From the sequence record NC_019526.1: a DNA stretch of 64,000 nt. One strand, given 5' to 3'. Positions 43,238 through 61,864 of this stretch are shown piece by piece. Each line of letters begins with the position of its first letter. Within the stretch, counting starts at the first letter, position 1. The notes under the pieces are model-generated. The model saw only the letters and a list, made by a program, of their open reading frames with translations, was not told the DNA's origin and did no database searches. The position numbers were made by a program, and so were the translations under genes.

Positions 43238-43238
43238 T

Positions 43239-44795: not shown

Positions 44796-44826
44796 TTTTG
44801 TTCAAAAAAATATTTTAATTTATTTT

Positions 44827-45001
44827 TTGAACGGACTTCAAAAATCGGATATAATAATAAAGGGTGTTAATTACAGAGACCCCCATAGTGTTCGCTACGC
44901 TCACATAATGATCTTACTCGTTGCACTCGTAAGATCATTATCCAATCGGCCTTCGGCGATTTCTTTTTGATTTCCTACGGAAACCAAACGAAACCACCAG
45001 C
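44827..45001. other. promoter plus cluster of GNA-triloop hairpins (origin/pas-like)
   Basis: TTGAAC-17-TATAAT; - strand GC[GTA]GC, GT[GCA]AC, CC[GAA]GG, TTTCC[GTA]GGAAA; reverse Chi at 44994. Confidence 0.4.
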
Positions 45002-45397
45002 AAAGGCAGATCCCATTATTTGATTTAGTTAGTACTGCGATTAATTAGTAATTCATTGCACTACATAGCAATCAATTCCTTTTGTAATAGCTCACAGGAC
45101 GCAATAAGACGCGTTTAAATGACTTCCCTATGTAATGCCATTCCTTTTTAATAAGTCCTCTTAAAACGCGTTACAGTGCGTTATATGGCGTTTTTATAAT
45201 ACTCATCATTTCTTTTTCAAAAAGTACTTGCATTAATGATCCAGTACTGCAATAATGTACTCACTGAAACGCAGTAAGCGAAGTAAGTAAATGCAAATAA
45301 GTACTTGACAAAGTGTTGTAGTACTGGCATAATGAATACATCAAAACGAAATAGCAAAGGGATTCAGTACTGAATCCCTGTTAAGGAGAAAAACCAA

Positions 45398-45871
45398 ATG
45401 TTAAAACTTCATAAAGTACTTGATAACGCAGTTGTAACCGACTTTTTCCTGTCTCTTAACAACGAACCGAAAACAGCGAAGGAAATTGTTTTGAGTGGTT
45501 ACATCGCCAGCAAGTCAGAGATCGCACATTTGGAAAGTGCTTTCAAGTCCGGTGATGCATTATACAAAAAAATGCAAAATACCATCGAAGATTTGCAATA
45601 TATCAATTTACGTGATATTGTAGACAATAAATTGGATATTTCAGAAGAAGCACGCGAGAAGCTGGTAAGTAAATTATGTTACCGCTGCCGAACTGCAAAA
45701 TGGAATCGCATTCGTAGTATTATTACTTACGATTTAAGTAATATCGATTCCAAATCAATTCTTGAACGTATGTTATTAAATTTACAAAGCAATGAGTGGT
45801 TTTATACCGCCGCTCAATCTCATAGCGAAGAAATTGCATATATTCGTGATTATGTAATTTACAGCAAGTAA
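45398..45871 (+). CDS. hypothetical protein
   Basis: Promoter-hairpin-AGGAG cassette. Confidence 0.8.
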   Translation: MLKLHKVLDNAVVTDFFLSLNNEPKTAKEIVLSGYIASKSEIAHLESAFKSGDALYKKMQNTIEDLQYINLRDIVDNKLDISEEAREKLVSKLCYRCRTAKWNRIRSIITYDLSNIDSKSILERMLLNLQSNEWFYTAAQSHSEEIAYIRDYVIYSK

Positions 45872-45944
45872 TTAATAATTGATTAGCCATCATTAAAGCT
45901 GGTGGCTAATAGAATATTAATAACCTGTTAGGAGAATAATCTTT

Positions 45945-46214
45945 ATGAAAGGTATTAGTACTTTAATTGATAAAAACACTCATGTAAGACGTTCAATGAT
46001 TGCCGTATCACTGGCTAAAGTTGTTGCAAGTGGTTATCTGGTTTTTGTTGTAGATGGTAAATTGCAAGAGCGTTCAATTGCATTTAGTACTAAAGAAAAT
46101 TGCCGTTATATTGTATACAAGAAAGAAGCATACAAGATAGATTTACCAGCGAAACCGATCTCCGGTGGTTACAATGTTGAAAGTCTATATGAAAGGCCAC
46201 CGTATACTGCGTAG
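45945..46214 (+). CDS. hypothetical protein
   Basis: AGGAG SD. Confidence 0.75.
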   Translation: MKGISTLIDKNTHVRRSMIAVSLAKVVASGYLVFVVDGKLQERSIAFSTKENCRYIVYKKEAYKIDLPAKPISGGYNVESLYERPPYTA

Positions 46215-46291
46215 AATCGATTTTGAGCGGCTTTAATGAAATATAGGGTATCAGTACTGATACCCGTTTAAAACAGTGTAGGAGTGATTCT

Positions 46292-46462
46292 GTGAAGCGT
46301 GAACAAGCTTTATTGACGCCTGAAGAGGCAAGACGCTATGAAATGTTTTCAAACCAGGAAACGATCAAAGCGGCACAATATAACCCGGTTGCTTGTACAG
46401 TACAAAGAAAGAATTTTGTACTAAATGAAGTAGAAAGTATTATCAAATCAAATAAGGAGTAA
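46292..46462 (+). CDS. hypothetical protein (56 aa)
   Basis: AGGAG SD, GTG start. Confidence 0.5.
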   Translation: MKREQALLTPEEARRYEMFSNQETIKAAQYNPVACTVQRKNFVLNEVESIIKSNKE

Positions 46463-46468
46463 CAAGCT

Positions 46469-46741
46469 ATGCAAAATAACCGTCCAATGATCCGCAACAT
46501 GCTTTTCGTATTCCAGAAAAAAGTTAATGTAACTTCGGTAAATGGTGAACGTAAATTAAATGCAGCATTCGCCAAATATACCCAAAGCAAAAACATCCAT
46601 TACTTTTATCTTACTCTGAATGAGTTTAATGATCTGGTAAAAGAAATGTTTGTCAGTACTGAAATTGTTGCACCTGTAAGTACTGACACCATTTTGAAAG
46701 AGTGGGAAAGTTTTTACAAAAGTTCTGTTGTAATCGCTTGA
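46469..46741 (+). CDS. hypothetical protein
   Basis: AGGAG SD. Confidence 0.75.
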   Translation: MQNNRPMIRNMLFVFQKKVNVTSVNGERKLNAAFAKYTQSKNIHYFYLTLNEFNDLVKEMFVSTEIVAPVSTDTILKEWESFYKSSVVIA

Positions 46742-46795
46742 CAACATAATCCAGTACTGGCATAATAACTACATAGACCACAAAGGAGAAACATA

Positions 46796-46975
46796 ATGGA
46801 AACTGTAATTGCTACTACCAAAATCAATGGACTGGATAATGAAGTTTCATTGATCCATGACGGTAACGAATATGTTGTGTCATATGGTATCTATAAAACC
46901 TATCATGACGCTATCAATGAAGCTTTTGAGGATTATATGAAAGCAATTGAAATTGCTTATGATGATTATCGTTGA
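46796..46975 (+). CDS. small acidic protein (59 aa)
   Basis: Own promoter, AGGAG SD. Confidence 0.7.
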   Translation: METVIATTKINGLDNEVSLIHDGNEYVVSYGIYKTYHDAINEAFEDYMKAIEIAYDDYR

Positions 46976-47058
46976 AAGTACTTGCTTTAATCATTCAGTA
47001 CTGTATAATGTATTACATCAAAGGGAATGAATGATTCATTCCCACATAACCAGGAGTA

Positions 47059-47418
47059 ATGACTATGTTTGATAAAGTTTTATTTTCTGATAACACCTCT
47101 GAAACCGAGATCCCGGAAGCGGTAAAAGCTTTTGCTCAATTAGTTGCCCAGCGTCAAACTGATAATTACGACGGGCCTTATTCTTTTCTTACTGAGATTA
47201 GTAAAGGCAAAAAGTTTATTAAACTTATTCGCCGCGAGAAGTGGAAAGATAACGGACAATTAACAGGCGGATCGGTATTTGCCTTTATTGATCCCGATGG
47301 TAACATTTACAAATCAGCGACAGCTAAAGCACCAGCTAAAGGCATTCGCGGAAATGTTAACATCAACGGCGGCGGTGATGCAATCGGGCGTGATGGTTAT
47401 ATTCGTTACTTTCGTTAA
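47059..47418 (+). CDS. hypothetical phage protein
   Basis: GKKFIKL...SVFAFID...GNIYK.A..KAPAKG motif. Confidence 0.8.
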   Translation: MTMFDKVLFSDNTSETEIPEAVKAFAQLVAQRQTDNYDGPYSFLTEISKGKKFIKLIRREKWKDNGQLTGGSVFAFIDPDGNIYKSATAKAPAKGIRGNVNINGGGDAIGRDGYIRYFR

Positions 47419-47507
47419 TTGACAAATCTTTACAAATCCAGGGGTTGACTTCGGTCGCCCCTTTTGTTATTATATATTCATACCACAGAGCAAGTGGTTT
47501 AGCCCAC

Positions 47508-47625
47508 AGGGTGCCGAGATGTATCTATAGTTTAATGATTTTAAGTACTGAAAAATAATTATAAAAAGTACTTGCTAGACGTGAATTCTTTTAAGAATTC
47601 ACTTGTATTTGTGATTCAGTACTGC
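47508..47625 (+). repeat. 118-bp direct repeat, copy 1
   Basis: Identical to 57395-57513 except a 1-nt indel. Confidence 0.9.
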
Positions 47626-47661
47626 TATTATATATTCATACCAATTAAGGAGATTATCCAA

Positions 47662-47820
47662 ATGAATACACAATATGTGCCGGTGATGAATATCACTATA
47701 GGAAATGGAAAAGGTATGCATCGATTCAGTACTACAAAGAGTTATACTCAGCGTACATTAGAATCATGTGCAATTACTAAATGGCAAATCAAACATTACT
47801 TCACTACGGACAAGAAATAA
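47662..47820 (+). CDS. hypothetical protein (52 aa)
   Basis: AGGAG SD; the track start lies in the promoter. Confidence 0.65.
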   Translation: MNTQYVPVMNITIGNGKGMHRFSTTKSYTQRTLESCAITKWQIKHYFTTDKK

Positions 47821-47932
47821 TGATTGTAAAAGTATTGACAACGATAATTCAGTACTGTATTATAACTGGTGTAGCGTTCGTGTTAGCAGTTGCTATAGTG
47901 TTTAGTACTGTAATTGTATTGGGGAACATATC

Positions 47933-48238
47933 ATGATTAAAAATATTGAAGCATTCGATAAAGCATATCTTTACACCAGTACTTTTCGGAATAGCGATGG
48001 CGATCCGGTTGAATTTAAAAATGTAGTACTGATCCGGCCTGGTTTTGATATTATTCATATCTGGAATTCATGGAATCAAGCGGCGGGCAATCGCTATACT
48101 ATTGATAAAGAAATTTCAATAGAAGAAGCGTTAAAACTTCCATCATTGCCGGATCGTTTATCCCTGGCTAGTCGTGTGGAACTGGTGGGTGATACCGCAC
48201 AATATATCACGCATGAGTATGAATTTAAGTACTTATAA
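47933..48238 (+). CDS. hypothetical protein
   Basis: GGGG SD. Confidence 0.7.
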   Translation: MIKNIEAFDKAYLYTSTFRNSDGDPVEFKNVVLIRPGFDIIHIWNSWNQAAGNRYTIDKEISIEEALKLPSLPDRLSLASRVELVGDTAQYITHEYEFKYL

Positions 48239-48324
48239 GTGTTGACAACATAATTCAGTACTGTATAATGTATTACATCAAAGGGGATACATAGTGTATC
48301 CCTGAATTAACAGGAGTAACCCAT

Positions 48325-48573
48325 ATGTCTAGTATCGTTATCAATGAAACCTTATTATCTGTTACTTATGACAATGACAGTGTTTTTCCGGGTAAAGATT
48401 ATGGGGACGAAATTCCCGTAAAAGTTGAACTCGATCAAAGTGTCGGTAATGCCGACGATATTAAACGCACTATGGTGGTTAAAATTGGCGATATCACTTT
48501 ATTGCCCATTGATATTGATTATATCAAGTTTATGATTGATCGTGCAAATACCATTGCCGAAACCTTCAAATAA
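48325..48573 (+). CDS. hypothetical acidic protein
   Basis: Promoter-hairpin-AGGAG cassette. Confidence 0.75.
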   Translation: MSSIVINETLLSVTYDNDSVFPGKDYGDEIPVKVELDQSVGNADDIKRTMVVKIGDITLLPIDIDYIKFMIDRANTIAETFK

Positions 48574-48656
48574 GTACTTGACAACTGGTTTCAGTACTGT
48601 ATAATGTTTATCAAAGGGGATACATAGTGTATCCCTGATTTAAAGGAGATTCTAAA

Positions 48657-48845
48657 ATGGCAGTAGTATACGGTTATATCAGCAACTATGATTTGACTTT
48701 CCGGGAAGTCGGTACTGAATTAGGTGCAAAGAATGCAGCAACGCGAAACGGCTCGACCCGCGTAGGATATCGCAGTAGTATTAATAATATGTATATTGAA
48801 ACGCATATCCGCAACGATAAAAAGGGTAAATGGGAAAAAGTGTAA
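48657..48845 (+). CDS. hypothetical protein
   Basis: Promoter-hairpin-AGGAG cassette. Confidence 0.75.
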   Translation: MAVVYGYISNYDLTFREVGTELGAKNAATRNGSTRVGYRSSINNMYIETHIRNDKKGKWEKV

Positions 48846-49235
48846 TCTAATTCCATTTACAAATCTTTACAAAACCAGTACTTGATTTAATTATTGAGTA
48901 CTGGTATTATATATTCATTGGCAGATAAGCCGCAGCCCACAGGGTGCCGAGGTGTATCTATAGTTTATTGAATTGAAGTACAGAAAAATATTTCTTGCAT
49001 AATTCATTTCTTATGTTATAATAGTAATCACATAAATTAATTGGAGTGAACAAAAATGTTATTAGATTGGCTCAATACTTTATCCCCTGCTGCTGGCCGA
49101 CGCTGGGCTATCGGTTCGTCGGTTGCCATCGTTGTAGGCGTCATTGTACTTTTAGTGATGATTTTCTAAAAAGTACTTGCTTTAATGATCCAGTACTGTA
49201 TAATGTACTTATACCAAATAACAGGAGTAAAACCG

Positions 49236-49553
49236 ATGAAAGATGTAACTTTACCAGTAGTTCAAACTAACTTTGAAAACCAATTCCTGGCCGAAGTATT
49301 CAAGATTGATAATGGCGTTGTATCAATCAATTACGGTTTCAATAGCGGCGGTTATGAAAAATTCATTTATTTCGTTACTGCCGATGGTGGATGCCTGGCA
49401 ATTGATACGGTACTGAATGAATTCAGTAAAGTAGATTTTAATGATGATAATGATCCTCAGTGGTATATTGTCGGCTATGACGTGAACTATGAAGATGAAG
49501 ATCTTTATGATGATCATACTAATCAAAAAATTGAATCCGCTTATGGGGAATAA
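49236..49553 (+). CDS. acidic hypothetical phage protein
   Basis: AGGAG SD; DPQW...VNYED...IESAYG motif. Confidence 0.75.
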   Translation: MKDVTLPVVQTNFENQFLAEVFKIDNGVVSINYGFNSGGYEKFIYFVTADGGCLAIDTVLNEFSKVDFNDDNDPQWYIVGYDVNYEDEDLYDDHTNQKIESAYGE

Positions 49554-49853
49554 AAATGATCATCGTACTATCAGAGAAAGAAAAGAAATTAATTCTTTCA
49601 GTACTGAAAGAATATCCCAGAAATATGCGGGAGCCGTTTGAAACAAATGGTGAATTCGAAGAGCATTTAAACGATATCGATTTATTGATATCCAAGATTG
49701 AATCACAATAGTGATGTACTGTAAAACGTCCTGTAATCGATTATGGGACGTTTTAAGGAATAGCACTATGATTTATTCAGTACTGTAAAAAAACGCTTGA
49801 AAATTGATTCCAGTACTGTATAGCTGCATTACTGTTTAATGTGGGGTATTAAA

Positions 49854-50069
49854 ATGAAATATGTTATGGTAGATGAAATTACTAGCACGAAACCCAGTGA
49901 TGATTATAACAAATGGCTTGCCCGTAGCAATAAATGTATTATTCCGCACGATGACCGCGTATATCATTGTTATGAATGCGGGGAGATTATACCAAATGTA
50001 CTGGATCATTCAATCTTTACATATGATGATCTTAATTACGCTCATTCAAGATGCCTTGATAAAAAATAG
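49854..50069 (+). CDS. small Cys/His protein
   Basis: CYEC...HSRC. Confidence 0.65.
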   Translation: MKYVMVDEITSTKPSDDYNKWLARSNKCIIPHDDRVYHCYECGEIIPNVLDHSIFTYDDLNYAHSRCLDKK

Positions 50070-50144
50070 TTGACAGTATCATATCAGTACTGTATAATGC
50101 TTTACATAGGAAAATTATTCTCCCCATTATCAGGAGTAAAGAAT

Positions 50145-50372
50145 ATGTTTTACATCGGTACTGTTAAAAAAAATTCAAATGTAATTGAAGCATCATTGAT
50201 TTGTACTAACAATGAAGTGGCTGGCTATGATTATGCTCAAGAACGATTCATGAAACACTATACCGGTGATGATTCAGTGTCATTCGATTTTGAACGTATC
50301 GGTGATGGTGTTACAATTATGAAATTTGAAGATCTCCCTGAAATCGATTTTGATTTTGTCGTTACACTGTAA
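50145..50372 (+). CDS. small acidic protein
   Basis: AGGAG SD. Confidence 0.7.
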   Translation: MFYIGTVKKNSNVIEASLICTNNEVAGYDYAQERFMKHYTGDDSVSFDFERIGDGVTIMKFEDLPEIDFDFVVTL

Positions 50373-50471
50373 AAAAAGTACTTGCATAATTCTTTCAGTA
50401 CTGTATACTGTACTTATACCAAACAAAAGCAAATGGAATCAGTACTGATTCCCTGTAAAGGAGATAGACCA

Positions 50472-50723
50472 ATGTCAGATCGTATCACTCGCAAAATGGT
50501 AGCAGATAAAGTTGCTGGGCTGAATCTTGCTATTGACCGTCGTGGATTGCCTGAAAAATATCAGGTAGTACTGGAAGATGGCAAATTCAATATTGAATTA
50601 CAGCCGTCTCATGTTTATACTAAACCAACGACAGTACAAGGGAATTTAAGTACACGTGAAGCATATCTTTACCTCAAAGGTATGTTTGAGATCCTTCTCA
50701 ATAATGTACCATATAAAGATTAA
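50472..50723 (+). CDS. hypothetical protein
   Basis: Promoter-hairpin-AGGAG cassette. Confidence 0.75.
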   Translation: MSDRITRKMVADKVAGLNLAIDRRGLPEKYQVVLEDGKFNIELQPSHVYTKPTTVQGNLSTREAYLYLKGMFEILLNNVPYKD

Positions 50724-50726
50724 AGA

Positions 50727-50757
50727 AAAAGGGGAGACAATGAGTCTCCCTTTTTTG
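50727..50757. terminator. bidirectional intrinsic terminator
   Basis: GGGAGAC-aatga-GTCTCCC flanked by A and T runs. Confidence 0.75.
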
Positions 50758-50949
50758 TATTCAGTACTAAATTATATAGATACATTTATGCACCCTGTGG
50801 GTTAGTAGCTTGTTCTGCTTTATGTAGTAATTATATGATAAAGCTGGTGGCTTGTCAACACTTATTTTAAAATAAAAAGTACTGAATAGTACTTGCAAAA
50901 AGTATTCAGTACTGTATAATGTTTGTATTGAGATTAAGGAGTTCTTACT

Positions 50950-51507
50950 ATGTTAATCAAAATGTATCACGGTTCTAATAATTTTGATCATCGCTGGGGA
51001 TATCTGGGTGGAAAACCTGGCAATTTTCATATGGGTTTTGGACTATATCTAACTAACTCTTATCGCTGGGCTGATAATTATGGGCGACGTCATTATGAGT
51101 TAGATTTAGATATTTGTAGTACTGGTGCCGCACATAATGTATGGATTCCTACTAAACACTTTATGGAATTCATAAGAGTATATTGTACTAAAAAGTTTTA
51201 TACAATGTGCTGTAAAGAATTTAAAGACCGTGAATCTTTGAATGTAGAACGCGTTGAATTGCTTATTATCAATATGGAAAGGCACGTTACGAAAATCGCT
51301 AAACCATTTGCTGAATTCGTCGCTGCCTGGGGTTGTACGCATAGCATTGAAATATCCGGTAACTATGGTGGTGTTTGCGTGCGGCTTTATGATTTCAGTA
51401 TTATAAAGAATTGTATCATAAGCCAGGAAACGCAGGATTTTTATTATCCAGATGAATTGACAAGATATCCTCAAAAAACTTGTATTAATGATTCAGTACT
51501 GATATAA
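50950..51507 (+). CDS. ADP-ribosyltransferase-fold protein (H-Y type)
   Basis: MYHGS ... MGFGLYLT ... WADNYG. Confidence 0.55.
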   Translation: MLIKMYHGSNNFDHRWGYLGGKPGNFHMGFGLYLTNSYRWADNYGRRHYELDLDICSTGAAHNVWIPTKHFMEFIRVYCTKKFYTMCCKEFKDRESLNVERVELLIINMERHVTKIAKPFAEFVAAWGCTHSIEISGNYGGVCVRLYDFSIIKNCIISQETQDFYYPDELTRYPQKTCINDSVLI

Positions 51508-51752
51508 TGAATTAAATTAATCAGGAGGAATTATCTTAAATGAATAACCGTCAATTGATGATCGATGCATCTCGTTTTCGTTCAAAAGAAGAAAAGAGAA
51601 GTTGCATTAAATGGGTTTTGTCAACTTTCATTATTGGATTACTTATTGTTGCTTTTGTTTATAGTTAGTACTTGACAATATAATCCAGTACTGTATAATG
51701 TTTATCAAAGGGAATGAATTATTCATTCCCGATTAATCAAAGGAGTTTTGCC

Positions 51753-51977
51753 ATGATCTATATTATCAAAGTATCCCCGACCGTAGGTAAATCAGAAGTT
51801 GTAGCTGTTATCACTTCCCTGGAAGCGAAAGATCTTCATACCCCGTTTAATGTATGGGTGGAGGATAATTTCGGACAATTCAGTACTGCTGAATATATCG
51901 AACAATTCGCTGTCCCGGACACTGGTAAAATCAAAGTGGATCGTGTCCTGGATTTTGATAACAGTAATTACTTTTAA
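51753..51977 (+). CDS. hypothetical protein
   Basis: Promoter-hairpin-AGGAG cassette. Confidence 0.7.
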   Translation: MIYIIKVSPTVGKSEVVAVITSLEAKDLHTPFNVWVEDNFGQFSTAEYIEQFAVPDTGKIKVDRVLDFDNSNYF

Positions 51978-52063
51978 AAACGTTTGACAACTGATTTCAG
52001 TACTGTATAATGTTTATCAAAGGGAATGAATTATTCATTCCCGATTAATCAAAGGGGTTTATC

Positions 52064-52210
52064 ATGAAAGAGTATATCTTTGAAGTAACTTTCACATTTG
52101 GCCCGCACCAACTGATCCGGTCTTCTGGCTACAACCGCGAACAAGCATTCAGCAACCTTCGCCGTATGTACCCCAATGTCGTGACCTGGGTCAAGTGTGA
52201 AGAAGCTTAA
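52064..52210 (+). CDS. hypothetical protein (48 aa)
   Basis: Duplicate cassette, AGGGG SD. Confidence 0.65.
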   Translation: MKEYIFEVTFTFGPHQLIRSSGYNREQAFSNLRRMYPNVVTWVKCEEA

Positions 52211-52290
52211 AATAATTAGTCAGTACTATTGACAACGGGTGATAGTACTGCTATAATTATTTTAACTTATACGGAATGGAGTTAAAACAA

Positions 52291-52527
52291 ATGTTCAGTG
52301 TCAGCAAACAAGGCGACAAATTTCTGGTTCAATACCATCATTTTGATCTGGTATACACTCAGCCAGATTGTGTATTCAGTACTCAGGAAGGTGCCGAAAA
52401 GCACAAAAAAGCCTTGATCGAAAATAGCAACAGTGGTACATTAGATTTCATCCAACAGTACTGGAATGAATCTAAGCTGGTGGACGGTTATTCCAACACA
52501 GTTTATTATGTAGGTATCACTGATTAA
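52291..52527 (+). CDS. hypothetical protein
   Basis: GGAG SD. Confidence 0.7.
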   Translation: MFSVSKQGDKFLVQYHHFDLVYTQPDCVFSTQEGAEKHKKALIENSNSGTLDFIQQYWNESKLVDGYSNTVYYVGITD

Positions 52528-52629
52528 TCGGGAGTACTGTTAATGTATATGCCAATTATCATACCGTTAGCAGTACTGTTAATCGCCGCCGTTATCTGCG
52601 AACAATATCATTTGTTAGGAATGTAAACT

Positions 52630-52800
52630 ATGATTCAATGTGAATTGTCAGTACTGATCACGCTGTTCTATATGTTGGGGCAAAAGAAACAAGATATTTC
52701 TGGTGATAATGCATTATTGTATCAATCATTAGACCAATGGCAACGATCTGAATTAAGCAATGCATGGGCGAAAGGTTACAACGATAGTACTGCAAAATAA
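52630..52800 (+). CDS. hypothetical protein (56 aa)
   Basis: AGGA SD. Confidence 0.55.
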   Translation: MIQCELSVLITLFYMLGQKKQDISGDNALLYQSLDQWQRSELSNAWAKGYNDSTAK

Positions 52801-52987
52801 TTTAAAAAAGGGGTTGACTTACGCCAGCCCTTTTGTTATCATTAGTACATAGCAAGAACAATGCTCAAGCCCACAGGGTGCGGAGGTGTATCTATAGTTT
52901 ATGTTGGTCTGAATCATTAATTTTCTTGACAATTGGTTTAGTACTGGATATAATAGCCGCCATTGAATACAGGAGGATTTTAAAAAA

Positions 52988-53254
52988 ATGGCCTATCATA
53001 CACCACATAGACATTTCATTGATAAACGCGGTATGGCTTTTAAAGCAATGAGTGACAATCGTAACACACAAATGTACTTTAAAGATATGACGTTAGAAGA
53101 AGCTATTGAAGCTGTAAGGAATGATCGTAAGCTTTCCAAGAAAGTTGCATCAGTACTTAATGCTTTTTGGTTTGAACGTACTACCAACAAAGAATACAAA
53201 GAAAAGATGATTGCACTTGGTAAAGTAGTAAGAGAAGAAAAATTATATCTTTAA
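52988..53254 (+). CDS. hypothetical basic protein
   Basis: AGGAGG SD. Confidence 0.75.
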   Translation: MAYHTPHRHFIDKRGMAFKAMSDNRNTQMYFKDMTLEEAIEAVRNDRKLSKKVASVLNAFWFERTTNKEYKEKMIALGKVVREEKLYL

Positions 53255-53505
53255 GTACTTGACTATGTGATTCAGTACTGCTATTATATATTCATACCAA
53301 TTAAGGAGATAGACCAAATGAAACAAGCTAAATTTAATTCAGAAATTAAAGCAGCAAAAGCACACAAAGTACAGTTAGTAGTACTGGTTATTGTATCAAT
53401 CTTTTTGCTGTGCAACATCGGCTAAAATAATTATTACAGTACTATTGACAACCAACGATAGTACTGGTATAATTACTTTACCAAATAAAAAAGGAGTAAC
53501 CAAAA

Positions 53506-53781
53506 ATGCGGATTAAACTTACCAGTGATGAGATTCATTCAGTACTGACTACCAATATGCAGGACTGGAAAAAGTACGCTGATATCGAAGAAGTCCAGGA
53601 ACTCAATGATGATTTGAGTGTAGATGAAATTATCACTATTTGCTCATCTCAATTCTTTGATGATATCAATGATGAAGAGCAAGATGTATTTGATATCATG
53701 GAAAAACATTTTATTGCGTATGATGTTTTCCCGTATACTCGCCAGGCTTATATTCTTATTCACAACATTTATAACAAATAA
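53506..53781 (+). CDS. highly acidic small protein
   Basis: About 20 D/E vs 7 K/R in 91 aa; AGGAG SD. Confidence 0.75.
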   Translation: MRIKLTSDEIHSVLTTNMQDWKKYADIEEVQELNDDLSVDEIITICSSQFFDDINDEEQDVFDIMEKHFIAYDVFPYTRQAYILIHNIYNK

Positions 53782-53793
53782 GGAATAATAATC

Positions 53794-54159
53794 ATGGAAA
53801 AAGAATTTAAAATCAAATACAATATCAGTACCGATGGCGGTTTTGAAGTACCAGAAGAAGATCAAGAACGTCTTAATGATGTTATTATGATTGACATTTC
53901 AAATAAAATCATTCAAGGCTACCGCGAAGGTGAATTGTGTGAATCGTTGATGGATCAATTCGATGAAGTGGAAACGTTTTATCGTGGCTGGTGGAGTATC
54001 GAAGAAGTTCACAAAGTACACGAATACCGTGTATTCTGGATTAATGGCGTTAATGATATCGAAGATATCATTGTAAAAGAAAGTAGTGAATCCGCCGCCA
54101 TTCAGTACTTTAAAGATCACTACCCCAACAAACGTTATCACCATTTAGAAAAAATTTAA
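53794..54159 (+). CDS. acidic hypothetical protein
   Basis: AAGGA SD. Confidence 0.75.
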   Translation: MEKEFKIKYNISTDGGFEVPEEDQERLNDVIMIDISNKIIQGYREGELCESLMDQFDEVETFYRGWWSIEEVHKVHEYRVFWINGVNDIEDIIVKESSESAAIQYFKDHYPNKRYHHLEKI

Positions 54160-54246
54160 AAAGTAATTGACAACATAATCCAGTACTGATATATTAATAC
54201 GCATAGGGGCAAACAACTTGCCCCACTAAACAAAAGGAACTACCAA

Positions 54247-54603
54247 ATGATTACTAAATTCTACGCTACTCGTGAACAGGCTCGGATCGTCGCTCGTGAA
54301 GAAGGCGAAACCTTCAAAGATATGGGTAAAGATTCCCCTGCTGGTCAACGCTGGGCAGTACTGTTCCGCGAGGTCAAAGACCTGGTAGAAAACGCTAAAG
54401 CCGTTGAAATGAACGTTCCCACCAAAGAAGATAAAGAACTGACTGATGCCCTCGCTGCTGCATTCTCCGCGATGGATAAAGCCGCAGCGGTAGTACTGAA
54501 AGTACCGGAATTTGTTACCAGAAAAGTGCATTCAGTACTACAAAATAAATTCAACGGTAAACAGGTTCAAGTGTTTACTAAACGTAAAATTCCGGTCATG
54601 TAA
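54247..54603 (+). CDS. hypothetical phage protein with host-optimal codons
   Basis: FYATREQAR...KDMG...GQRWAV. Confidence 0.8.
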   Translation: MITKFYATREQARIVAREEGETFKDMGKDSPAGQRWAVLFREVKDLVENAKAVEMNVPTKEDKELTDALAAAFSAMDKAAAVVLKVPEFVTRKVHSVLQNKFNGKQVQVFTKRKIPVM

Positions 54604-54707
54604 AATCTGACTATTACAGTACTAACAAAGGGGCTTCAATGCCCCTTTAAACGTCCTGTAAGCCATTCTAAGAGGTTTTACATGAAAAGGTACAACTACA
54701 CAAAGGA

Positions 54708-54929
54708 GTGATGAAAGTTCATTATAATGCCCCGCAACGCATTATAGATAGAGCCATTGAACTAGCCAATCAATACCTAGCTGGTGGATTAACTCCCAGG
54801 AAGTTAAGCAACGGGAAGTTATATGTAATCAACGTTGATACTAATAATCGTATAGTAATCAAAGGTGAAAGCATATCACTGTATGAACATCAGCAGTATA
54901 ACAAGAAAGTAAAAAATATTAGTAGATAA
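54708..54929 (+). CDS. hypothetical protein (possible ParE/RelE-like small fold, unverified)
   Basis: AGGAG SD. Confidence 0.6.
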   Translation: MMKVHYNAPQRIIDRAIELANQYLAGGLTPRKLSNGKLYVINVDTNNRIVIKGESISLYEHQQYNKKVKNISR

Positions 54930-55008
54930 GTGTTGACAACTGATTTCAGTACTGCCATAATGTATACATACAAGGCAATACCGCCTAATAACATAGGAGT
55001 AACTGAAA

Positions 55009-55431
55009 ATGAAAAAATCCACTAAAATTATCTTAGGTGTATTTGTTGTTCCGGCAGTAGCCTTTTTTACTTGTGCTATGATTTTTGGTGATGCTTCTCG
55101 GGTTGCCGCAAAAATCGAAAAAGAAAAACAAGTCCAGGTGGAAGTCAAGAAAGAAGAAAAGAAAAATTATAACACTGTATGGGAAGCAATTTGCCATACC
55201 AGTAATGGTAAAAGGATCTCCATCCTTACAGCGATGAATAATGGAAAATCAATCGTCGGAAACGAATATATGGAAGTTACTTCCAGTACTGGTAAAGAAT
55301 TTGTAATGACGAACTATAATAACAATAACGTTGCAATTGTTACACAAGATTTTAAAGGTAATGCAGTACTTGAATATCATACGGAATATGAAGTAATATT
55401 TGCAAAATGCACATTTGAATGGGGTGCATAA
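55009..55431 (+). CDS. membrane-anchored/secreted protein
   Basis: N-terminal hydrophobic helix; two Cys in the C-terminal domain. Confidence 0.75.
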   Translation: MKKSTKIILGVFVVPAVAFFTCAMIFGDASRVAAKIEKEKQVQVEVKKEEKKNYNTVWEAICHTSNGKRISILTAMNNGKSIVGNEYMEVTSSTGKEFVMTNYNNNNVAIVTQDFKGNAVLEYHTEYEVIFAKCTFEWGA

Positions 55432-55614
55432 AAATAAACATAATAAACAAAAAAGGGGGTTGACACAGGTCAGCCCTTTTGCTATTATTAATATCAAGAA
55501 AACAAGCTAACCCACAGGGTGCATAAATGTATCTATAATTTATTAAAGAATTTTAGTACTTGACAACGTAGTACAGCAGTACTAAAATATCTACATACAA
55601 AGGAGATTACCAAA

Positions 55615-56199
55615 ATGAACAAACATCTTAAAGTACTGAATAAATGTAAATCCAATACCGAAATGTTACTGTACTGTTACAAAAATTTAATTAAACTCGG
55701 GAGAGGTTCATCCAGAACAGTATTTTTGTTAACAAAAAACAAAGTACTGAAAGTTGCTCATAACCATATTGGCAACCAACAGAATACAGCAGAAATCACT
55801 GCATGGTTGTATATTGATTATGACCGCTATTATAATAAACGCTTTTTCGCTAAAGTGTTCCCTGATATGTCGCATTTTAAAGATGTATACATAGTACAGG
55901 AGTACTGCGACAATATCAGTACTAAAGAAGCGAAGCCATACATTGAACATTACTTGACACCTAGCACTATTGAAAATGAGCGTGCTAAACGCTTCCACAC
56001 GGCGTTAAGAGATGTAGACAATACCCTTAACTATAAAACGCTGGTGGACTTAAACGTGGGCAATATAGGCCGTTCTGTAAGGGGTGCAATAAAACTCCGT
56101 GATTATGGATTATCTGAACATATTGCTAAACAGTATAGAGAAGCCCGCGACCAGTACCACCAACTCAAAAGTATTAGTAACATAAGTATTGATTTATAA
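55615..56199 (+). CDS. minimal protein kinase
   Basis: LGRGSSRTVF, VLKVA, QNTAE, IVQEYC, DLNVGNIG, IKLRDYGL. Confidence 0.8.
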   Translation: MNKHLKVLNKCKSNTEMLLYCYKNLIKLGRGSSRTVFLLTKNKVLKVAHNHIGNQQNTAEITAWLYIDYDRYYNKRFFAKVFPDMSHFKDVYIVQEYCDNISTKEAKPYIEHYLTPSTIENERAKRFHTALRDVDNTLNYKTLVDLNVGNIGRSVRGAIKLRDYGLSEHIAKQYREARDQYHQLKSISNISIDL

Positions 56200-56264
56200 T
56201 TTCAGTACTGCTATAGTACTTTCACAGGGGAGATAATCTCCCCAATCACAAAGGAGATTTTACC

Positions 56265-56627
56265 ATGAGTACTAAACCATTTGTAACCACTCGTTCTAAT
56301 CTGACTGAGATCTATGTACATGGTGGATATGAGGAAACGTATGTCACTGGTATTATGGTAGAATTCAATCAGGGTTATCGGTTTATGTTGGTAGATTCAG
56401 AAATCTATCATACACAACAAGATAAACATGGTTATGTCAATAAGTACTCCACCGATGAAGTACTGAAACGCCTGGATAACAAAATTAAACAAATTCAAAA
56501 ACATCTTGACAACGGCGGAAAACTTAATCATTTACTTTGGGATAGCTTAGATCCCTGCTACGGTTCCGATGCATATGGTAAAAGCCGTGACACTGCAATG
56601 AAAGTACTTAAAGATTATTTCTTTTAA
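56265..56627 (+). CDS. hypothetical protein
   Basis: Promoter-hairpin-AGGAG cassette. Confidence 0.75.
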   Translation: MSTKPFVTTRSNLTEIYVHGGYEETYVTGIMVEFNQGYRFMLVDSEIYHTQQDKHGYVNKYSTDEVLKRLDNKIKQIQKHLDNGGKLNHLLWDSLDPCYGSDAYGKSRDTAMKVLKDYFF

Positions 56628-56707
56628 GTATTGACAAGTAATTCCAGTACTGGCATAATGTATTTCAAGGAGGTAATAACACCTCCTACCTTCAAGGAGT
56701 AGTGACT

Positions 56708-56944
56708 ATGAATACTAAAGAAATGCTTTGTGAGTTCGCCAGTAACAATCTTGGCAACGCCGCGTTCATTGATGGTTTTAATTATGTAGCAACTCGTGAT
56801 CAAGAAGGTAAAGTATTCGTTAAAGATCGTATGGGCTTTTCTATCCAGGTTCAATCCGGTACTGCAAGCCATATCGACGGCATGAATGTATGGGCTGCTA
56901 CTATCCCCGGTGATGGAACATATCATTTCCGTATCGTAAAATAA
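56708..56944 (+). CDS. hypothetical protein
   Basis: Promoter-hairpin-AGGAG cassette. Confidence 0.75.
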   Translation: MNTKEMLCEFASNNLGNAAFIDGFNYVATRDQEGKVFVKDRMGFSIQVQSGTASHIDGMNVWAATIPGDGTYHFRIVK

Positions 56945-57033
56945 TTTAAAAAGTACTGGACAATACAATCCAGTACTGTATAATGTTTTGCATAGGGAGA
57001 GATAATCTCTCCCACTAAAGGAGAATACCGAAA

Positions 57034-57315
57034 ATGATTACTGGTCACATTACTAACTATGCAAAACGCCGCGATGTAGAAATAGAAGTACTGAAAGCAG
57101 GCGAAGTTGACGATGACGCTCAGGTATGGTTCTACACCGCAGACAATGATTGTGAACCAGTACTGATGTACCTGATTAATAATGATGGTTCTCTTACTTA
57201 TCGTAGCAAACTGATGAAGTCCCTGGAAGATATGCCAGCACATATCAATAATAAAGAAGTACTGAAACGCGTAATCTGCTACATCTCAGACCAGCACAAA
57301 GCGGATATGATGTAA
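57034..57315 (+). CDS. hypothetical protein
   Basis: Promoter-hairpin-AGGAG cassette. Confidence 0.75.
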   Translation: MITGHITNYAKRRDVEIEVLKAGEVDDDAQVWFYTADNDCEPVLMYLINNDGSLTYRSKLMKSLEDMPAHINNKEVLKRVICYISDQHKADMM

Positions 57316-57394
57316 TCTTTACAAATATGGGGGTTGACTAATGTCAGCCCTTTTGGTATTATATATTCAATCCAGCGAAATGGTCTAACCCTCA

Positions 57395-57513
57395 AGGGTG
57401 CCGAGATGTATCTATAGTTTAATGATTTTGAAGTACTGAAAAATAATTATAAAAAGTACTTGCTAGACGTGAATTCTTTTAAGAATTCACTTGTATTTGT
57501 GATTCAGTACTGC
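57395..57513 (+). repeat. 118-bp direct repeat, copy 2
   Basis: Matches 47508-47625. Confidence 0.9.
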
Positions 57514-57597
57514 CATAATATATCCATACAAGGGAAACATAGTGTTTCCCGATAATCCACAGCAATAGTGCTGGTGGATGAACCAGGAGTAATAACC

Positions 57598-57894
57598 ATG
57601 CAAGACAAATCAATTCATGTTCAAGTAGTTTCAAGCCGTGGCTATGACGATGTAGTACTGGATATCATGGTTAAAGATCTGCGGGACTATGCAATCATTG
57701 CACGTCATATCATGGTTAACTCCATTTGTATCAGTACTGGTGCTGATATGGAAGAAAACCGCTTACATATAGAAGAACATCTATACAAAGCACGCATGAA
57801 TGACAGCAGTGTATTCATCATTGAAGGTGCCGAGGGTAAAGAGTATACTGTATACCTTCGCCAGTACCAGGAAGTAGAAAAAGAAGAAGATTAA
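57598..57894 (+). CDS. acidic hypothetical protein
   Basis: AGGAG SD; the track start lies in a Chi-containing 5' hairpin. Confidence 0.75.
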   Translation: MQDKSIHVQVVSSRGYDDVVLDIMVKDLRDYAIIARHIMVNSICISTGADMEENRLHIEEHLYKARMNDSSVFIIEGAEGKEYTVYLRQYQEVEKEED

Positions 57895-57985
57895 TTTATA
57901 AAAAGTACTTGCTTTAATAGTTCAGTACTGTATACTGTTTATCAAGGGGAAGCAATAGTGCCTCCCCACTCATAGGAGATACACC

Positions 57986-58384
57986 ATGTTTACTATCACT
58001 TCTCGACAGGATGTTCTGTACGTTGCTAAAACTTTTGGTCTGGAAGCACTCGATCATATCATTCGCAACAGTACAATGAATGCTGATGCAAATGGGATTA
58101 TCATTGATACTCGGGCATGGGCCGCCAATGAAGTCATTGCCATCGAGCATGTTAACGATGGTAACAATGTCTATGAAGTGGATGCATGTTTCAATGCTGT
58201 TAATGTAGCAGGTATGTATATCACTGGTATTGATGATATCACTATCATCCGCTCCGGTATGGGTAACTTCTCCATGCCTTTACGTTCAGCAATGGAAAGA
58301 AAAGAGATCAGTACAGAACAATGTGCAAATATAATCAATGAGATTACCGCACGTAATGAAGCTGCTGCTATCCTTTACCCGTAG
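57986..58384 (+). CDS. hypothetical protein
   Basis: Promoter-hairpin-AGGAG cassette. Confidence 0.75.
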   Translation: MFTITSRQDVLYVAKTFGLEALDHIIRNSTMNADANGIIIDTRAWAANEVIAIEHVNDGNNVYEVDACFNAVNVAGMYITGIDDITIIRSGMGNFSMPLRSAMERKEISTEQCANIINEITARNEAAAILYP

Positions 58385-58404
58385 TAGTTCAGTACAGTAC
58401 TGTA

Positions 58405-58437
58405 AGCCCATAGGATAAACCCTGTGGGCTTTTTCTT
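58405..58437 (+). terminator. intrinsic terminator closing the early module
   Basis: AGCCCATAGG-ataaac-CCTGTGGGCT then T run. Confidence 0.75.
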
Positions 58438-58686
58438 TATGGGTAATATGATTGGGTAGGTTATGGTGTAAGTACTGTCAGAATTGATTACAGGAGGATA
58501 GCGTAAAAATTGATTAATTGATTTCAGTACTGAACTGTTATTGAGAAAAAATATTAGTCAAAAAATAATTGACTTAGAAAATATTTAAACCAATACCTTA
58601 TACTGTATGAAATAGTTTCGGACTGTGATTATATATTTGACTAAGTAAAGTGGTATTAGGCTTAGCACTTTTATATAGTATTACAG

Positions 58687-58787
58687 TACTGAACAATTTA
58701 TATCATTCTGTGCACTATTCTGTACTGGAACAATTTATATCATTCTGTGCACTATTCTGTACTGAACAATTTATACTATTCTGTACT
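58687..58787 (+). repeat. about 2.5 tandem copies of a 36-37 bp unit
   Basis: TACTG(G)AACAATTTATATCATTCTGTGCACTATTCTG. Confidence 0.85.
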
Positions 58788-59168
58788 ACACTAATTGAAA
58801 TTAATGGTTATAAAACCCTTGCCTCTTCAATAAAAGTGTGCTATGATGTAATTAATATGTGTGTTTCTATTATGTGAAATTATAGGTACAAAATGAAAAC
58901 CAGACCGTATCACACTGAAATAAAAGAAGCTTTTTATAATGGTAATCCATTAAGAAGTATTGAATTAGTTTTGCTTCGTAATTTAGGTACACCATCGCAA
59001 GAAGAGTGTGTTCAAGAATATATAAATCGTTTGATATAATGTAAAGTACAAAGCAAAAGGCATTTTTATCATTACTTAAATCGTAATACATAAAGAATTA
59101 GATGATATTTAATGCTGTACTAATATCTTGACTCTTTTTTTCTACAATTGTATATAACAGGAATAGTA

Positions 59169-59534
59169 ATGCAACCTAAATTAATAAATTTTAAAAAATT
59201 TGATTCAAGAGTTAGTAAATCATGTCAAGAGTATACAAAAAGATATTCAATTCAACCCAATACTGTTAGGGTAAAAGAAATCTATCTACTTCATGCACTG
59301 GATACTAATGTACAATACGGGTACTCATTGCAGTACATTGATGCATTAATGCAAGAAATAAAAAGAAAGTGTATATGCGTGTACATTACTGGTGTTAATT
59401 ACGAGAAGTTCAGATTTGCAGTAAAAGACTGGAACGATCCTGCTGTGGTACTGAAAGAATGTGAAACGATGGAAGAAGCCATGGCGTTTATCAAGACCAA
59501 CAATTATCTTTGTGTAGAAAATTTATCAATTTGA
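59169..59534 (+). CDS. hypothetical protein, distant paralog of 62813..63160
   Basis: Shared C-terminal F-x-V...C-E-(S/T)-x-E-x-A...K-x-NNY. Confidence 0.7.
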   Translation: MQPKLINFKKFDSRVSKSCQEYTKRYSIQPNTVRVKEIYLLHALDTNVQYGYSLQYIDALMQEIKRKCICVYITGVNYEKFRFAVKDWNDPAVVLKECETMEEAMAFIKTNNYLCVENLSI

Positions 59535-59632
59535 CTAACCTTTGTTTGCATTAAAAGTAGACAAAGGTTTTTCTTTTTGCTATGATATCAGTACTACATA
59601 ATTGTATCAACTCATTGGTGAGGAATCAAAAA

Positions 59633-60031
59633 ATGGCAAAGAAAAAGAAAAAGATTGACAGAACATTACGGCATCCTAAGTACAGAGTTCAATATCATGA
59701 TAGTGAACAGATAGAAGTAGATTTGGGCGGTGGAAGTAGGTTAAAATATGCTAACAATGCATATGTGAATAATAAATTTGTATTAACATTGTATAAAAAT
59801 TTCAAGTATCATTCAAGTAATGATCTTCTTGATTATACATTTATTAGTACTGAAGAAGAATTATTTCAGCATTCTTTGTTGTGTGCAGTTGATATTGATT
59901 TTTCGGTACTGGTACAGTTACAGAAAGCTTTAAAGCATCAAATGTATCAATATATTTTTCCAAATAAACTGGAAATGATTAATATGAAGAATAGATATGT
60001 TTTGGATATTACTGGTACTGAAATTGTTTAA
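59633..60031 (+). CDS. hypothetical protein with EEExFQxS motif
   Basis: STEEELFQHSL. Confidence 0.75.
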   Translation: MAKKKKKIDRTLRHPKYRVQYHDSEQIEVDLGGGSRLKYANNAYVNNKFVLTLYKNFKYHSSNDLLDYTFISTEEELFQHSLLCAVDIDFSVLVQLQKALKHQMYQYIFPNKLEMINMKNRYVLDITGTEIV

Positions 60032-60055
60032 TAACAATATAACTAATGAGCCAAA

Positions 60056-60583
60056 ATGAAAATTAATATCAAAGATGATAGTGAATTAAGTACATTAGTA
60101 CAAGATATATGTACTGTATACAATAAGATGAAATCTGTAACTAAAGATAAAGGAAGGATAGATGTATTACGCGGTGAATACAGATTTAATCATATATTGA
60201 GTAAAAATTCATCTGTACTGCAAACTTGCATTAGTAATGTTCAATACAATATCATTGAATACGGTTCTTTCTTTTCTGATTACTGCTATGATAATATGAT
60301 AAAGATTGATAGTACTGGTAATATTTTGGATGTTTATTTAGCACCGAGGGGTGCAGTATTAGAAATTATTAAAATTGGTGATATTAATAACACATTGGAA
60401 CACATTGAATTGCCTCCAAGGTCTACTGAGATGACAGAGGAATATGTATTTCAATTAAGTACAGTACATGAATATTTTTCTGCTATTATAATGATCACAG
60501 AGTTAAAGAAAAGAATTAATCGCAAGATGCGTGTTCATGTACCTGATTTCAGTACTGAATTGATCAAGTACATTGAGATATAA
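60056..60583 (+). CDS. hypothetical protein with FQLST motif
   Basis: MTEEYVFQLSTV. Confidence 0.8.
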   Translation: MKINIKDDSELSTLVQDICTVYNKMKSVTKDKGRIDVLRGEYRFNHILSKNSSVLQTCISNVQYNIIEYGSFFSDYCYDNMIKIDSTGNILDVYLAPRGAVLEIIKIGDINNTLEHIELPPRSTEMTEEYVFQLSTVHEYFSAIIMITELKKRINRKMRVHVPDFSTELIKYIEI

Positions 60584-60662
60584 AATGTCTTGACATTGGC
60601 TTTTCTTTTTGCTATTATAATTATAAACCCTTATTATACTTTACAAAGAGTAAGAAAATAAA

Positions 60663-61307
60663 ATGACTACAAGTGAATTATCTGAACTGTTTGGGATTTT
60701 ATCAGTACTGATGCCTAAGATTGAAAGTAATCCACATCATTTATTGAGTCCAAAAGCACAATCTATTTTTAGTATTGAAAAGCGAGTGGATCTGGAATAC
60801 CATGAATACCATGCTTATTTCAAAGCTATTGAAAATGGTGAGATCATACCAAAAGTATATCATGTTAGTATTAATGAATTGAGTTCTTACACTCGCTGCG
60901 AAGTTACTCGTCGTGGAAATTATTATAATACTACTTATACTTGTGAACGAGTATTAACAGTGAAAGAAAATTCACATGATTTTAATGTAATTAATCTTAC
61001 TGATGATGGTAAAGTGAAAGAAGTTATGTATCATCCTACATCAGAAGAAATTATGATCAACAAAGGTGGTGTTTGGGGAAGTCGACATAAAATTAAAATT
61101 CCTAATTACAAAGACTATGATGATGTTGATGCTTACATGTTTCAGTTAAGTACTGTAAAGGATTTTAGTACTGAAGAAGAAAATATTATGAAGTTCTTTA
61201 TGTTCTTACAGAAGTTTAAAAGTTCACGAAAGCGTTTGCCTAAATTTAGTACAAACATTGAACTGATTTCATTATCTAAACTGCTAGAGTTATATGACCA
61301 AAATTGA
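60663..61307 (+). CDS. hypothetical protein with FQLST motif
   Basis: DVDAYMFQLSTV. Confidence 0.8.
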   Translation: MTTSELSELFGILSVLMPKIESNPHHLLSPKAQSIFSIEKRVDLEYHEYHAYFKAIENGEIIPKVYHVSINELSSYTRCEVTRRGNYYNTTYTCERVLTVKENSHDFNVINLTDDGKVKEVMYHPTSEEIMINKGGVWGSRHKIKIPNYKDYDDVDAYMFQLSTVKDFSTEEENIMKFFMFLQKFKSSRKRLPKFSTNIELISLSKLLELYDQN

Positions 61308-61587
61308 ATACTATTCAGTACTGAATATTCAAGACTTATGTTATGATATGTATAATAATGCGAGTGTTTACAGAAAAGCAATGCGTTCAGTACTGAATAC
61401 CTTAGTCGAAGAATTCAATTCAAAATATAAAGGAACGCAGGTACTGATAAAAATTGATAATGGTGTTTATAAAACTGTAATTAAATATTATACTATATCA
61501 TATATCAATTGTGCATTCAAAACTGATATTGGATGGAGAAGATATTTTGATGAAACTACTATGATAGTCGGGAATAAAAATGACTAA
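61294..61587 (+). CDS. MTK-x-EY-x-SV family paralog 1
   Basis: Clear paralog of the next two ORFs. Confidence 0.8.
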   Translation: MTKIEYYSVLNIQDLCYDMYNNASVYRKAMRSVLNTLVEEFNSKYKGTQVLIKIDNGVYKTVIKYYTISYINCAFKTDIGWRRYFDETTMIVGNKND

Positions 61588-61864
61588 AGATGAATATTTT
61601 TCAGTACTGAATATACAGGAAGTATGTAATGAATTATACTTCACTCCTTATACAGAAGTATTGCGTTCTGTACTACAATCACTACAGAAGGAATTCAATG
61701 CAAAGTACAGAGGAACTCCAGTACGAACAAAAAACAATGAATTTGTCTATGAGACGGTAATTGATCATTATATTATATCGTTCATTGATTGTGTGTTCAA
61801 AACTGATATTGATATTGGATGGAACAGATATTTTGATGAAACCGTTATGATCATTGGGAAATAA
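61580..61864 (+). CDS. MTK-x-EY-x-SV family paralog 2
   Basis: FKTDI..GWxRYFDET shared. Confidence 0.8.
   Translation: MTKDEYFSVLNIQEVCNELYFTPYTEVLRSVLQSLQKEFNAKYRGTPVRTKNNEFVYETVIDHYIISFIDCVFKTDIDIGWNRYFDETVMIIGK

Follow-up and report, generated by a model that had tools for sequence, protein, structure and literature searches.

The window analysed here is a 64,000-nucleotide stretch of DNA that corresponds to positions 186001-250000, + strand, of the record of Klebsiella phage vB_KleM_RaK2 (JQ513383 / NC_019526), and our subject is a gene in it that encodes a 194-aa protein with a predicted kinase-like fold. An open reading frame (ORF) scan revealed a sole long frame at this locus, 55615-56199 (+), which has an ATG start and which the RaK2 record labels 'hypothetical protein'. 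A reading of this DNA made from its letters alone (the sequence-only reading) had called the product a minimal kinase carrying the Gly loop, the Lys, the alphaC Glu, D-x4-N and DYG, and all of these core motifs are indeed there. The same reading had started the feature at 55560, which is the beginning of the -35 hexamer of the promoter; the ORF itself begins at 55615. The features of the gene and of its product, a half kinase of the PHROGs family phrog_4301, are the following (hidden Markov model, HMM; AlphaFold2, AF2):

55560-55588, + strand: sigma-70-type promoter of the kinase gene, TTGACA-17-TAAAAT (11/12 consensus matches)
55600-55605, + strand: Shine-Dalgarno sequence AAGGAG, 9 nt 5' of the kinase ATG (sequence)
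55615-56199, + strand: coding sequence of the 194-aa half kinase (phrog_4301), RaK2 record 241615-242199 (ORF, family HMM and model)
55699-55722, + strand: Gly-rich loop G29-R-G-S-S-R34-T-V36, with Arg34 invariant in the family (alignment)
55750-55752, + strand: Lys46 in VLKVA, the beta3 'VAIK' lysine, invariant in 71/71 (alignment)
55771-55794, + strand: family signature G53-x-x-Q56-N57-x-x-E60, at the start of helix alphaC (alignment, model)
55792-55794, + strand: alphaC glutamate Glu60 (alignment, model)
56047-56064, + strand: catalytic loop D145-L-N-V-G-N150 (alignment)
56101-56109, + strand: D163-Y-G165, the DFG-equivalent metal-binding motif, with Asp and Gly invariant (alignment)
56116-56196, + strand: C-terminal helix, residues 168-191, which closes the protein (secondary structure of the AF2 model)

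Profile searches pointed to the protein kinases. Pfam Pkinase (PF00069) aligned with residues 22-174 over profile positions 1-152 of 263, with an expectation value (E) of 2.8e-4, and the homologue P0021 scored 26.4 bits against the same profile. The phrog_4301 HMM matched residues 2-192 over its positions 15-194 of 225 (E 7.1e-38), and found nothing else in the RaK2 genome. Among 1.84 billion representatives, searched exhaustively with HMMER, 131 homologues were obtained at E<=1e-3, mostly of 180-250 aa. When the family profile was run against the PDB sequences, 384 matches were obtained at E<=1, among them MKK4, PAK, MEK1 and AKT, and the best 60 of the 384 were all protein kinases. Note that the family profile was required for this, as a search of the PDB chains with the single sequence gave no match. 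Moreover, the HHpred analysis made by the Muenster annotators placed the orthologue in that phage at 99.9% on 6J5T_M. The NCBIfam search returned chance-level matches only, and the PADLOC search gave no match for the RaK2 protein; the PADLOC model PD-T4-6, hit by one homologue at E ~1e-3, was discarded as generic kinase similarity.

Conservation was counted in an alignment of 71 of the 131 homologues. R34, K46, G53, Q56, E60, G152, D163 and G165 are invariant, and D145 and N57 are each kept in 97%. Of the 20 members of the jumbo-phage clade, 18 have N150, and across the wider family this position is occupied by N, H or S; at position 148, six of the 20 have Lys, RaK2 has Val, and K64-1 and Muenster have Met. 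Because of these conserved residues, the family can be described by the signature G-x-G-S-S-R, V-L-K-x-A, G-x-x-Q-N-x-x-E, D-x4-[NHS]-x-G and D-Y-G. The D-x4-N-x12-D spacing of the RaK2 kinase is the same as in PKA; unlike canonical Hanks-type kinases, the RaK2 protein is without the His-Arg that precedes the catalytic Asp. Among the close orthologues RaK2, K64-1 and Muenster, the ratio of non-synonymous to synonymous substitution rates (dN/dS) is 0.13-0.19, and the gene is, as judged from these sequences, under purifying selection. The replacements among these three phages cluster in loop 114-120 and in the C-terminal helix; V148M, in the catalytic loop, is also found.

A kinase-like bilobal fold is confidently predicted for the protein. 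The AF2 model, built from a 71-row alignment, has a mean predicted local distance difference test score (pLDDT) of 92.8 and a predicted template modelling score (pTM) of 0.85. It begins with two N-terminal helices, followed by three strands, the third of which carries K46, helix alphaC (residues 51-70) with E60, and two further strands; it continues with alphaD, alphaE (122-138), the catalytic loop, two short strands, the DYG and the final helix 168-191. The regulatory domain is absent, in agreement with the sequence-only reading: the protein is a single module plus the two N-terminal helices and the one C-terminal helix. VIA-align superposed the model on CDKL1 (Z 10.5, model residues 2-169 on chain residues 2-150), CDK2 (Z 10.1), MPS1 (Z 9.5), APH(2'') (Z 9.0) and PRPK (Z 8.8). 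Foldseek against the PDB returned only kinase-like folds and SAICAR synthetases, with Lpg2603 at the top (1.2e-5), followed by PRPK, PknB, Rio2 and MPS1, and with OspG later at E 4.8e-4. Independently of Foldseek, all PDB clusters were searched, and nearly all of the 50 rows listed were kinase-like folds, the exceptions being SAICAR synthetases.

The structural alignments to kinases end at model residue ~165-175. The protein itself ends 29 residues after the DYG and is without the activation segment, the APE and helices alphaF-alphaI, and the members of the wider family end 12-15 residues after the DYG. Since every alignment to a canonical kinase ends at the DFG of that kinase, we call this protein a 'half kinase', which comprises subdomains I-VII only. 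A split gene, with the C-lobe supplied by the downstream ORF, was considered and rejected: that ORF has no kinase match and is not conserved in phages Munch and UB, and the whole family ends just after the DYG. Thus, the truncation is real.

The kinase call is not new, as it already exists for the orthologues in K64-1, in Muenster, in Munch and in the Sharanji paper. The K64-1 RefSeq gp473 is labelled 'protein kinase', and Muenster gp043, Munch gp046 and the SE_PL orthologue are labelled 'putative protein kinase'; the orthologue in Sharanji is WNN14351.1. The orthologues of the RaK2-like jumbo phages, which share 95-97% identity with the RaK2 protein in Alcyoneusvirus and 35-37% in Asteriusvirus and Munch, have the same length and occupy the same place as the RaK2 gene, in or near the terminal repeat.

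The position of the gene in RaK2 was deduced by comparison with Muenster (96% DNA identity), whose record begins at the physical end and has a PhageTerm terminal repeat at 1-20030. The Muenster kinase gene, at 17325-17909, lies inside this repeat. By blastn, Muenster position 1 falls on window position 38815, and Muenster 18853-22956 on window 57489-61597. The corresponding stretch of the window is:

38815-58666, + strand: stretch matching the Muenster 20,030-bp direct terminal repeat, with small + strand genes, an early-type module (blastn; right boundary extrapolated)

The gene is thus probably in the direct terminal repeat, at most 20 kb from whichever end leads and in two copies per virion genome. 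The same arrangement is seen in other phages. By tblastn, orthologues lie 16-20 kb from the start of the record in Munch, Turkey3/5, A4, ph0011 and others; they are in annotated terminal repeats, or occur twice per record, in fENko-Kae01, vB_Ec-M-J, fEgEco12, ELP-22, CRJP21, G17 and WPEC5. Sharanji has a terminal repeat of 20,668 bp, with its orthologue at 20026-20610. In the 50-62 kb section of the window, the + strand carries six sigma-70-like promoters with a perfect match and seven with 11/12. The 'early module' of the sequence-only reading was therefore a good description, being a + strand array of strong host-type promoters inside the region that matches the Muenster terminal repeat. The terminal-repeat DNA that carries the kinase gene probably enters the cell first. 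Because of the ~20-kb terminal repeat, the gene's own promoter and its ribosome-binding site, transcription by the unmodified host RNA polymerase on entry of the DNA end is most likely, and from these sequence features we infer immediate expression of the kinase gene. Note that the G+C content of the region equivalent to the terminal repeat (38815-58666) is 35.9%, versus 31.7% for the genome.

Munch and UB lack conserved counterparts of the immediate neighbours of the gene (a 140-aa membrane protein and a 120-aa ORF), and the looser synteny of the module with them is limited to ORFs 54247, 54708, 56702 and 57986. Among the neighbouring ORFs, the Pfam and PHROG searches assigned a function to just one, the 73-aa ORF at 54708-54929 (+), which carries a ParE-like toxin domain (PF24732, E 2e-10; phrog_1525). 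This ORF is annotated as a YafQ-like toxin in K64-1 and Muenster and belongs to the same early module in Munch and UB; no recognisable antitoxin was found among the ORFs that neighbour it. Upstream of the kinase gene lies a further intergenic feature:

55453-55540, + strand: intergenic cassette made of a G+C-rich hairpin (55453-55480), a promoter-like site and then GGGTGC...TGTATCTATAAT (sequence)

The hairpin overlaps the promoter-like site, TTGACA-17-TATTAT at 55460-55488 (+). Salmonella phages 7t3 and SE_PL and Escherichia phage phAPEC6 share the intergenic DNA at 55449-55543 with 86% identity, and the genes that flank the cassette are without a match at the DNA level in these three phages. 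In the promoter of the kinase gene, the motif CAGTACT (55577-55583) stands directly 5' of the -10 hexamer; it is present in 323 copies in the window, compared to 5.8 expected. The palindrome CAGTACTG has 247 copies in the genome, of which the 220-240 kb bin (terminal-repeat region) holds 56, and often adjoins -10 hexamers, with the local consensus TTCAGTACTGAA; examples of these motifs in the window are at 55577-55583 and 56203-56210. Outside the window, the RaK2 genome holds at 294131-294877 a gene for a NinI-like Ser/Thr protein phosphatase of the lambda type (phrog_246, E 2.6e-64), so that the phage combines a kinase with a phosphatase. A relevance of protein phosphorylation in the RaK2 infection would agree with this; such phosphatases are common in phages.

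Among the 131 homologues there are ~20 long metagenomic proteins with two to four complete half-kinase modules in tandem (~200 aa each), exemplified by P0011, P0022, P0018, P0015, P0025 and P0017, with ~14 others. The loci of such tandem modules, on metagenomic, phage-like contigs, are:

L014, 204-2975
L026, 5656-8565
L027, 1051-3132

The contigs that carry these genes look phage-like. In P0011, an open frame under the standard bacterial code, the modules span residues 103-306, 314-498, 510-704 and 725-922, and the signature residues are kept in every tandem module with few exceptions. These arrays confirm the boundaries of the half-kinase module, and they raise the idea that modules could cooperate. 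The fold predicted for the two-module protein P0128 had a pLDDT of 73, a pTM of 0.50 and a low-confidence linker; given this pTM and the disordered linker, no fixed packing between the modules is predicted. One three-module gene, on a 149-kb contig, is tail-to-tail (convergent) with a gene for a Metallophos phosphatase-like protein.

The sequence-only reading had compared the protein with the T7 gp0.7 kinase (T7K), which was said to phosphorylate host proteins broadly and to counter defences. This background agrees with the 2026 Nature paper, which reports that T7K disarms bacterial defences by phosphorylation (PMC13645617). The analogy held for the architecture, since the kinase domain of T7K, too, stops soon after a DFG-like motif and shares the D-x4-N-x12-D spacing (D195, N200 and D213 in T7K; D145, N150 and D163 in RaK2), and failed for family membership. 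T7K belongs to phrog_2828 (E 1.6e-169; Pfam PF27024). This profile had no match in the RaK2 protein (E<=1), the RaK2 genome (E<=10) or Muenster (E<=1), and T7K did not match phrog_4301. Thus, on these profile comparisons, the RaK2 kinase is outside the T7K family, in the separate family phrog_4301. The two families can coexist in one phage. Munch has a phrog_2828 match at 326390-327088 plus the phrog_4301 gene at 17785-18339, and UB has a phrog_2828 match at 243989-244480 plus two phrog_4301 genes, the phrog_2828 matches having E 3e-16 and 2e-17, respectively; Muenster and RaK2 have the phrog_4301 gene only. The T7K-like protein of UB found Autographiviridae kinases at 1e-10 to 2e-15 and nothing in RaK2. 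The Nature paper mentions 'jumbophage T7K homologues', by which the separate T7K homologues of Munch and UB are probably meant. Note that the Asteriusvirus phages carry a second, shorter phrog_4301 paralogue (UB MH383160.1, 240736-241128, a 137-aa frame, E 5e-46), which in UB is ~3 kb from the T7K-like kinase gene. With this paralogue and the T7K-like gene, Asteriusvirus has three kinase-like genes, compared to one in RaK2.

We favour, with a confidence somewhat above even, the interpretation that this protein acts early as a phosphotransferase, is constitutively active and has host or phage proteins as its substrates. The half kinase, with its subdomains I-VII, would be transcribed by the host RNA polymerase once the DNA end enters, and would phosphorylate host (or phage) proteins with ATP early in infection. 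Lacking an activation loop, it would escape regulation and be permanently 'on'; its function would resemble that of the T7 gp0.7 kinase domain, but its own family, phrog_4301, is a separate one. The conserved residues and the model suggest that the half kinase is probably active and, by analogy, a role in host takeover or in anti-defence, as had been proposed from the sequence, is plausible. More tentatively, and as a proposal about which we remain doubtful, phrog_4301 could represent a second, independent lineage of phage early kinases. Its module, free of a C-lobe, would be intrinsically active or completed by a host protein or a neighbouring module; it would be used singly in the terminal repeats of RaK2-like phages or concatenated up to four times, and would have specific host targets (e.g. 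defence or gene-expression proteins) rather than the blanket phosphorylation of T7K.

Several observations weigh against a constitutively active protein kinase. The Pkinase score of the RaK2 protein, 20.8 bits, is below the Pfam gathering threshold of 31.7. Recognisable elements for the binding of protein substrates are missing from the RaK2 half kinase, and OspG, Bud32 and Rio depend on a partner or work mainly as ATPases. Position 148 is Val in RaK2 and Lys in several relatives, and this substitution could lower the activity. Contigs from wastewater metatranscriptomes, 90-99% alike, span parts of the gene; as these are possibly DNA carry-over, transcription is not demonstrable from them. PHROGs labels phrog_4301 as 'unknown function', and according to the Sharanji paper the function of the protein is unknown. 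Moreover, depletion of Ser/Thr/Tyr in the early proteins is a signature of T7K phages, and we compared the 44 ORFs of the terminal-repeat region, taken from a greedy caller, with the rest. Ser+Thr+Tyr make up 17.9% in these ORFs versus 19.5% elsewhere (Mann-Whitney p 0.07 against other small ORFs); there is no distinct depletion, several other 20-kb bins being equally low, and this is evidence neither way.

The truncation is also what would be seen in a partner-dependent half kinase or ATPase, inactive alone and switched on or completed by a host or phage protein, an explanation that we regard as unlikely while giving it real weight. Its main output may be ATP hydrolysis or the phosphorylation of a single partner, by analogy with OspG (ubiquitin/E2~Ub), Bud32/PRPK and Rio. 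OspG, too, has subdomains I-VII only; PRPK/Bud32 superposes with a template modelling (TM) score of 0.53 and Z 8.8 over 142 residues, and Rio1 and Rio2 with Z 8.1-8.2; and the tandem proteins of two to four intact modules hint at work side by side. However, no conserved adjacent gene is shared with Munch or UB, the two-module model is without fixed packing and the OspG match is weak. The homodimer prediction (ipSAE 0.00) speaks neither for nor against self-association. A substrate other than protein, such as a small molecule, a nucleotide signal, an envelope sugar or lipid, or RNA, appears improbable. Kinase-like folds that act on non-proteins include aminoglycoside and choline kinases and the archaeal tRNA kinase Ark1, and the model does superpose on APH(2'') (Z 9.0 over 159-164 residues), Ark1 (Z 7.6) and TkArkI (Z 7.3). 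There is also a weak match to Pfam ABC1 (E 0.028), many members of the wider family have His or Ser instead of Asn in the catalytic loop, and the elements with which canonical protein kinases hold the peptide are all absent. Yet the top matches in both sequence and structure are Ser/Thr/Tyr protein kinases, the larger C-lobe with the substrate pocket of small-molecule kinases is absent here, and the neighbours are without a recognisable metabolic function.

That the protein could be a diverged T7 gp0.7 orthologue without the shut-off domain, and hence a hyper-promiscuous kinase of the T7K type, is more improbable still. When the profile of the RaK2 clade was compared with that of nine aligned T7K members, the match was collinear through all motifs, but remote (E 7.6e-5, probability 62%), and together with the shared spacing, the same truncation after the DFG-like motif, the same kind of place at the leading genome end and an ESM Atlas neighbour cluster in which 11% of the members have PF27024 (Phage_T7_kinase), it would fit such an origin. 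Opposed to this are the absence of any cross-match between phrog_2828 and phrog_4301, the presence in Munch and UB of a true T7K homologue besides the phrog_4301 gene, the DYG in place of DPV, the different alphaC motif and the lack of Ser/Thr/Tyr depletion in the early proteins. Membership of the T7K family is thus largely refuted. We give least credence, and very little, to an inactive pseudokinase that would only bind ATP or a host protein. The Lys at position 148 of several relatives being Val in RaK2, and the sub-threshold Pfam score, would agree with it; however, the phosphotransfer residues are invariant, or nearly so, in the 71 homologues and in every tandem module, and the low dN/dS is at odds with it.

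An early phosphotransferase in RaK2 would be of interest beyond this phage. T7K switches off many defence systems by mass phosphorylation, and every uncharacterised phage kinase is therefore a candidate counter-defence tool. The family phrog_4301 is kept in the DNA that enters first, in RaK2-like jumbo phages infecting Klebsiella, E. coli, Salmonella, Yersinia or Erwinia, and some of these phages are considered for therapy. Its activity, its targets and its effect on the host range in defence-rich strains would bear on how general kinase-based takeover is, and the extreme truncation, together with the tandem relatives, bears on the minimum portion of a kinase needed for catalysis.

Compared to the known systems, the Hanks-type kinases CDKL1, CDK2, MPS1 and PknB superpose with the RaK2 protein from the N-lobe to the DFG (Z 9.4-10.5, ~113-131 residues, 17-20% identity) and differ in having the second half, with the activation segment, the APE and alphaF-alphaI (Pfam positions 153-263). 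Bud32/PRPK and Rio share with it a small kinase-like fold without a classical activation segment, PRPK with Z 8.8 (142 aligned, root-mean-square deviation 3.9) and the best Foldseek TM-score (0.53), and Rio2 with Z 8.2. Unlike the RaK2 kinase, they are universal cellular proteins of KEOPS or ribosome assembly, largely ATPases, longer and with more C-lobe, and there is no family-level sequence match between them and the RaK2 protein. OspG/NleH of Shigella and E. coli resemble it in their ~190 residues, in having subdomains I-VII only and in keeping all the catalytic residues, but are secreted effectors whose place of action is the animal cell and whose activator is ubiquitin, a protein that the bacterial host does not have. 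The structural match to OspG is weak (Foldseek E 4.8e-4, TM 0.35-0.40), with no specific sequence relationship shown; OspG/NleH nevertheless are the precedent for an active half kinase made of subdomains I-VII (PMC3585378). Finally, the RaK2 protein differs from T7K in its DYG instead of DPV, in its G-S-S-R loop and in its G-x-x-Q-N-x-x-E, being without the invariant K-x6-D-S-G-A-A-Y region of T7K, and from the Autographiviridae members of that family in lacking the C-terminal shut-off/DNA-binding domain. It resembles T7K as the product of a gene, early in T7 and predicted to be early in RaK2, that sits at the end of the genome which is first to enter and that is transcribed from host promoters.

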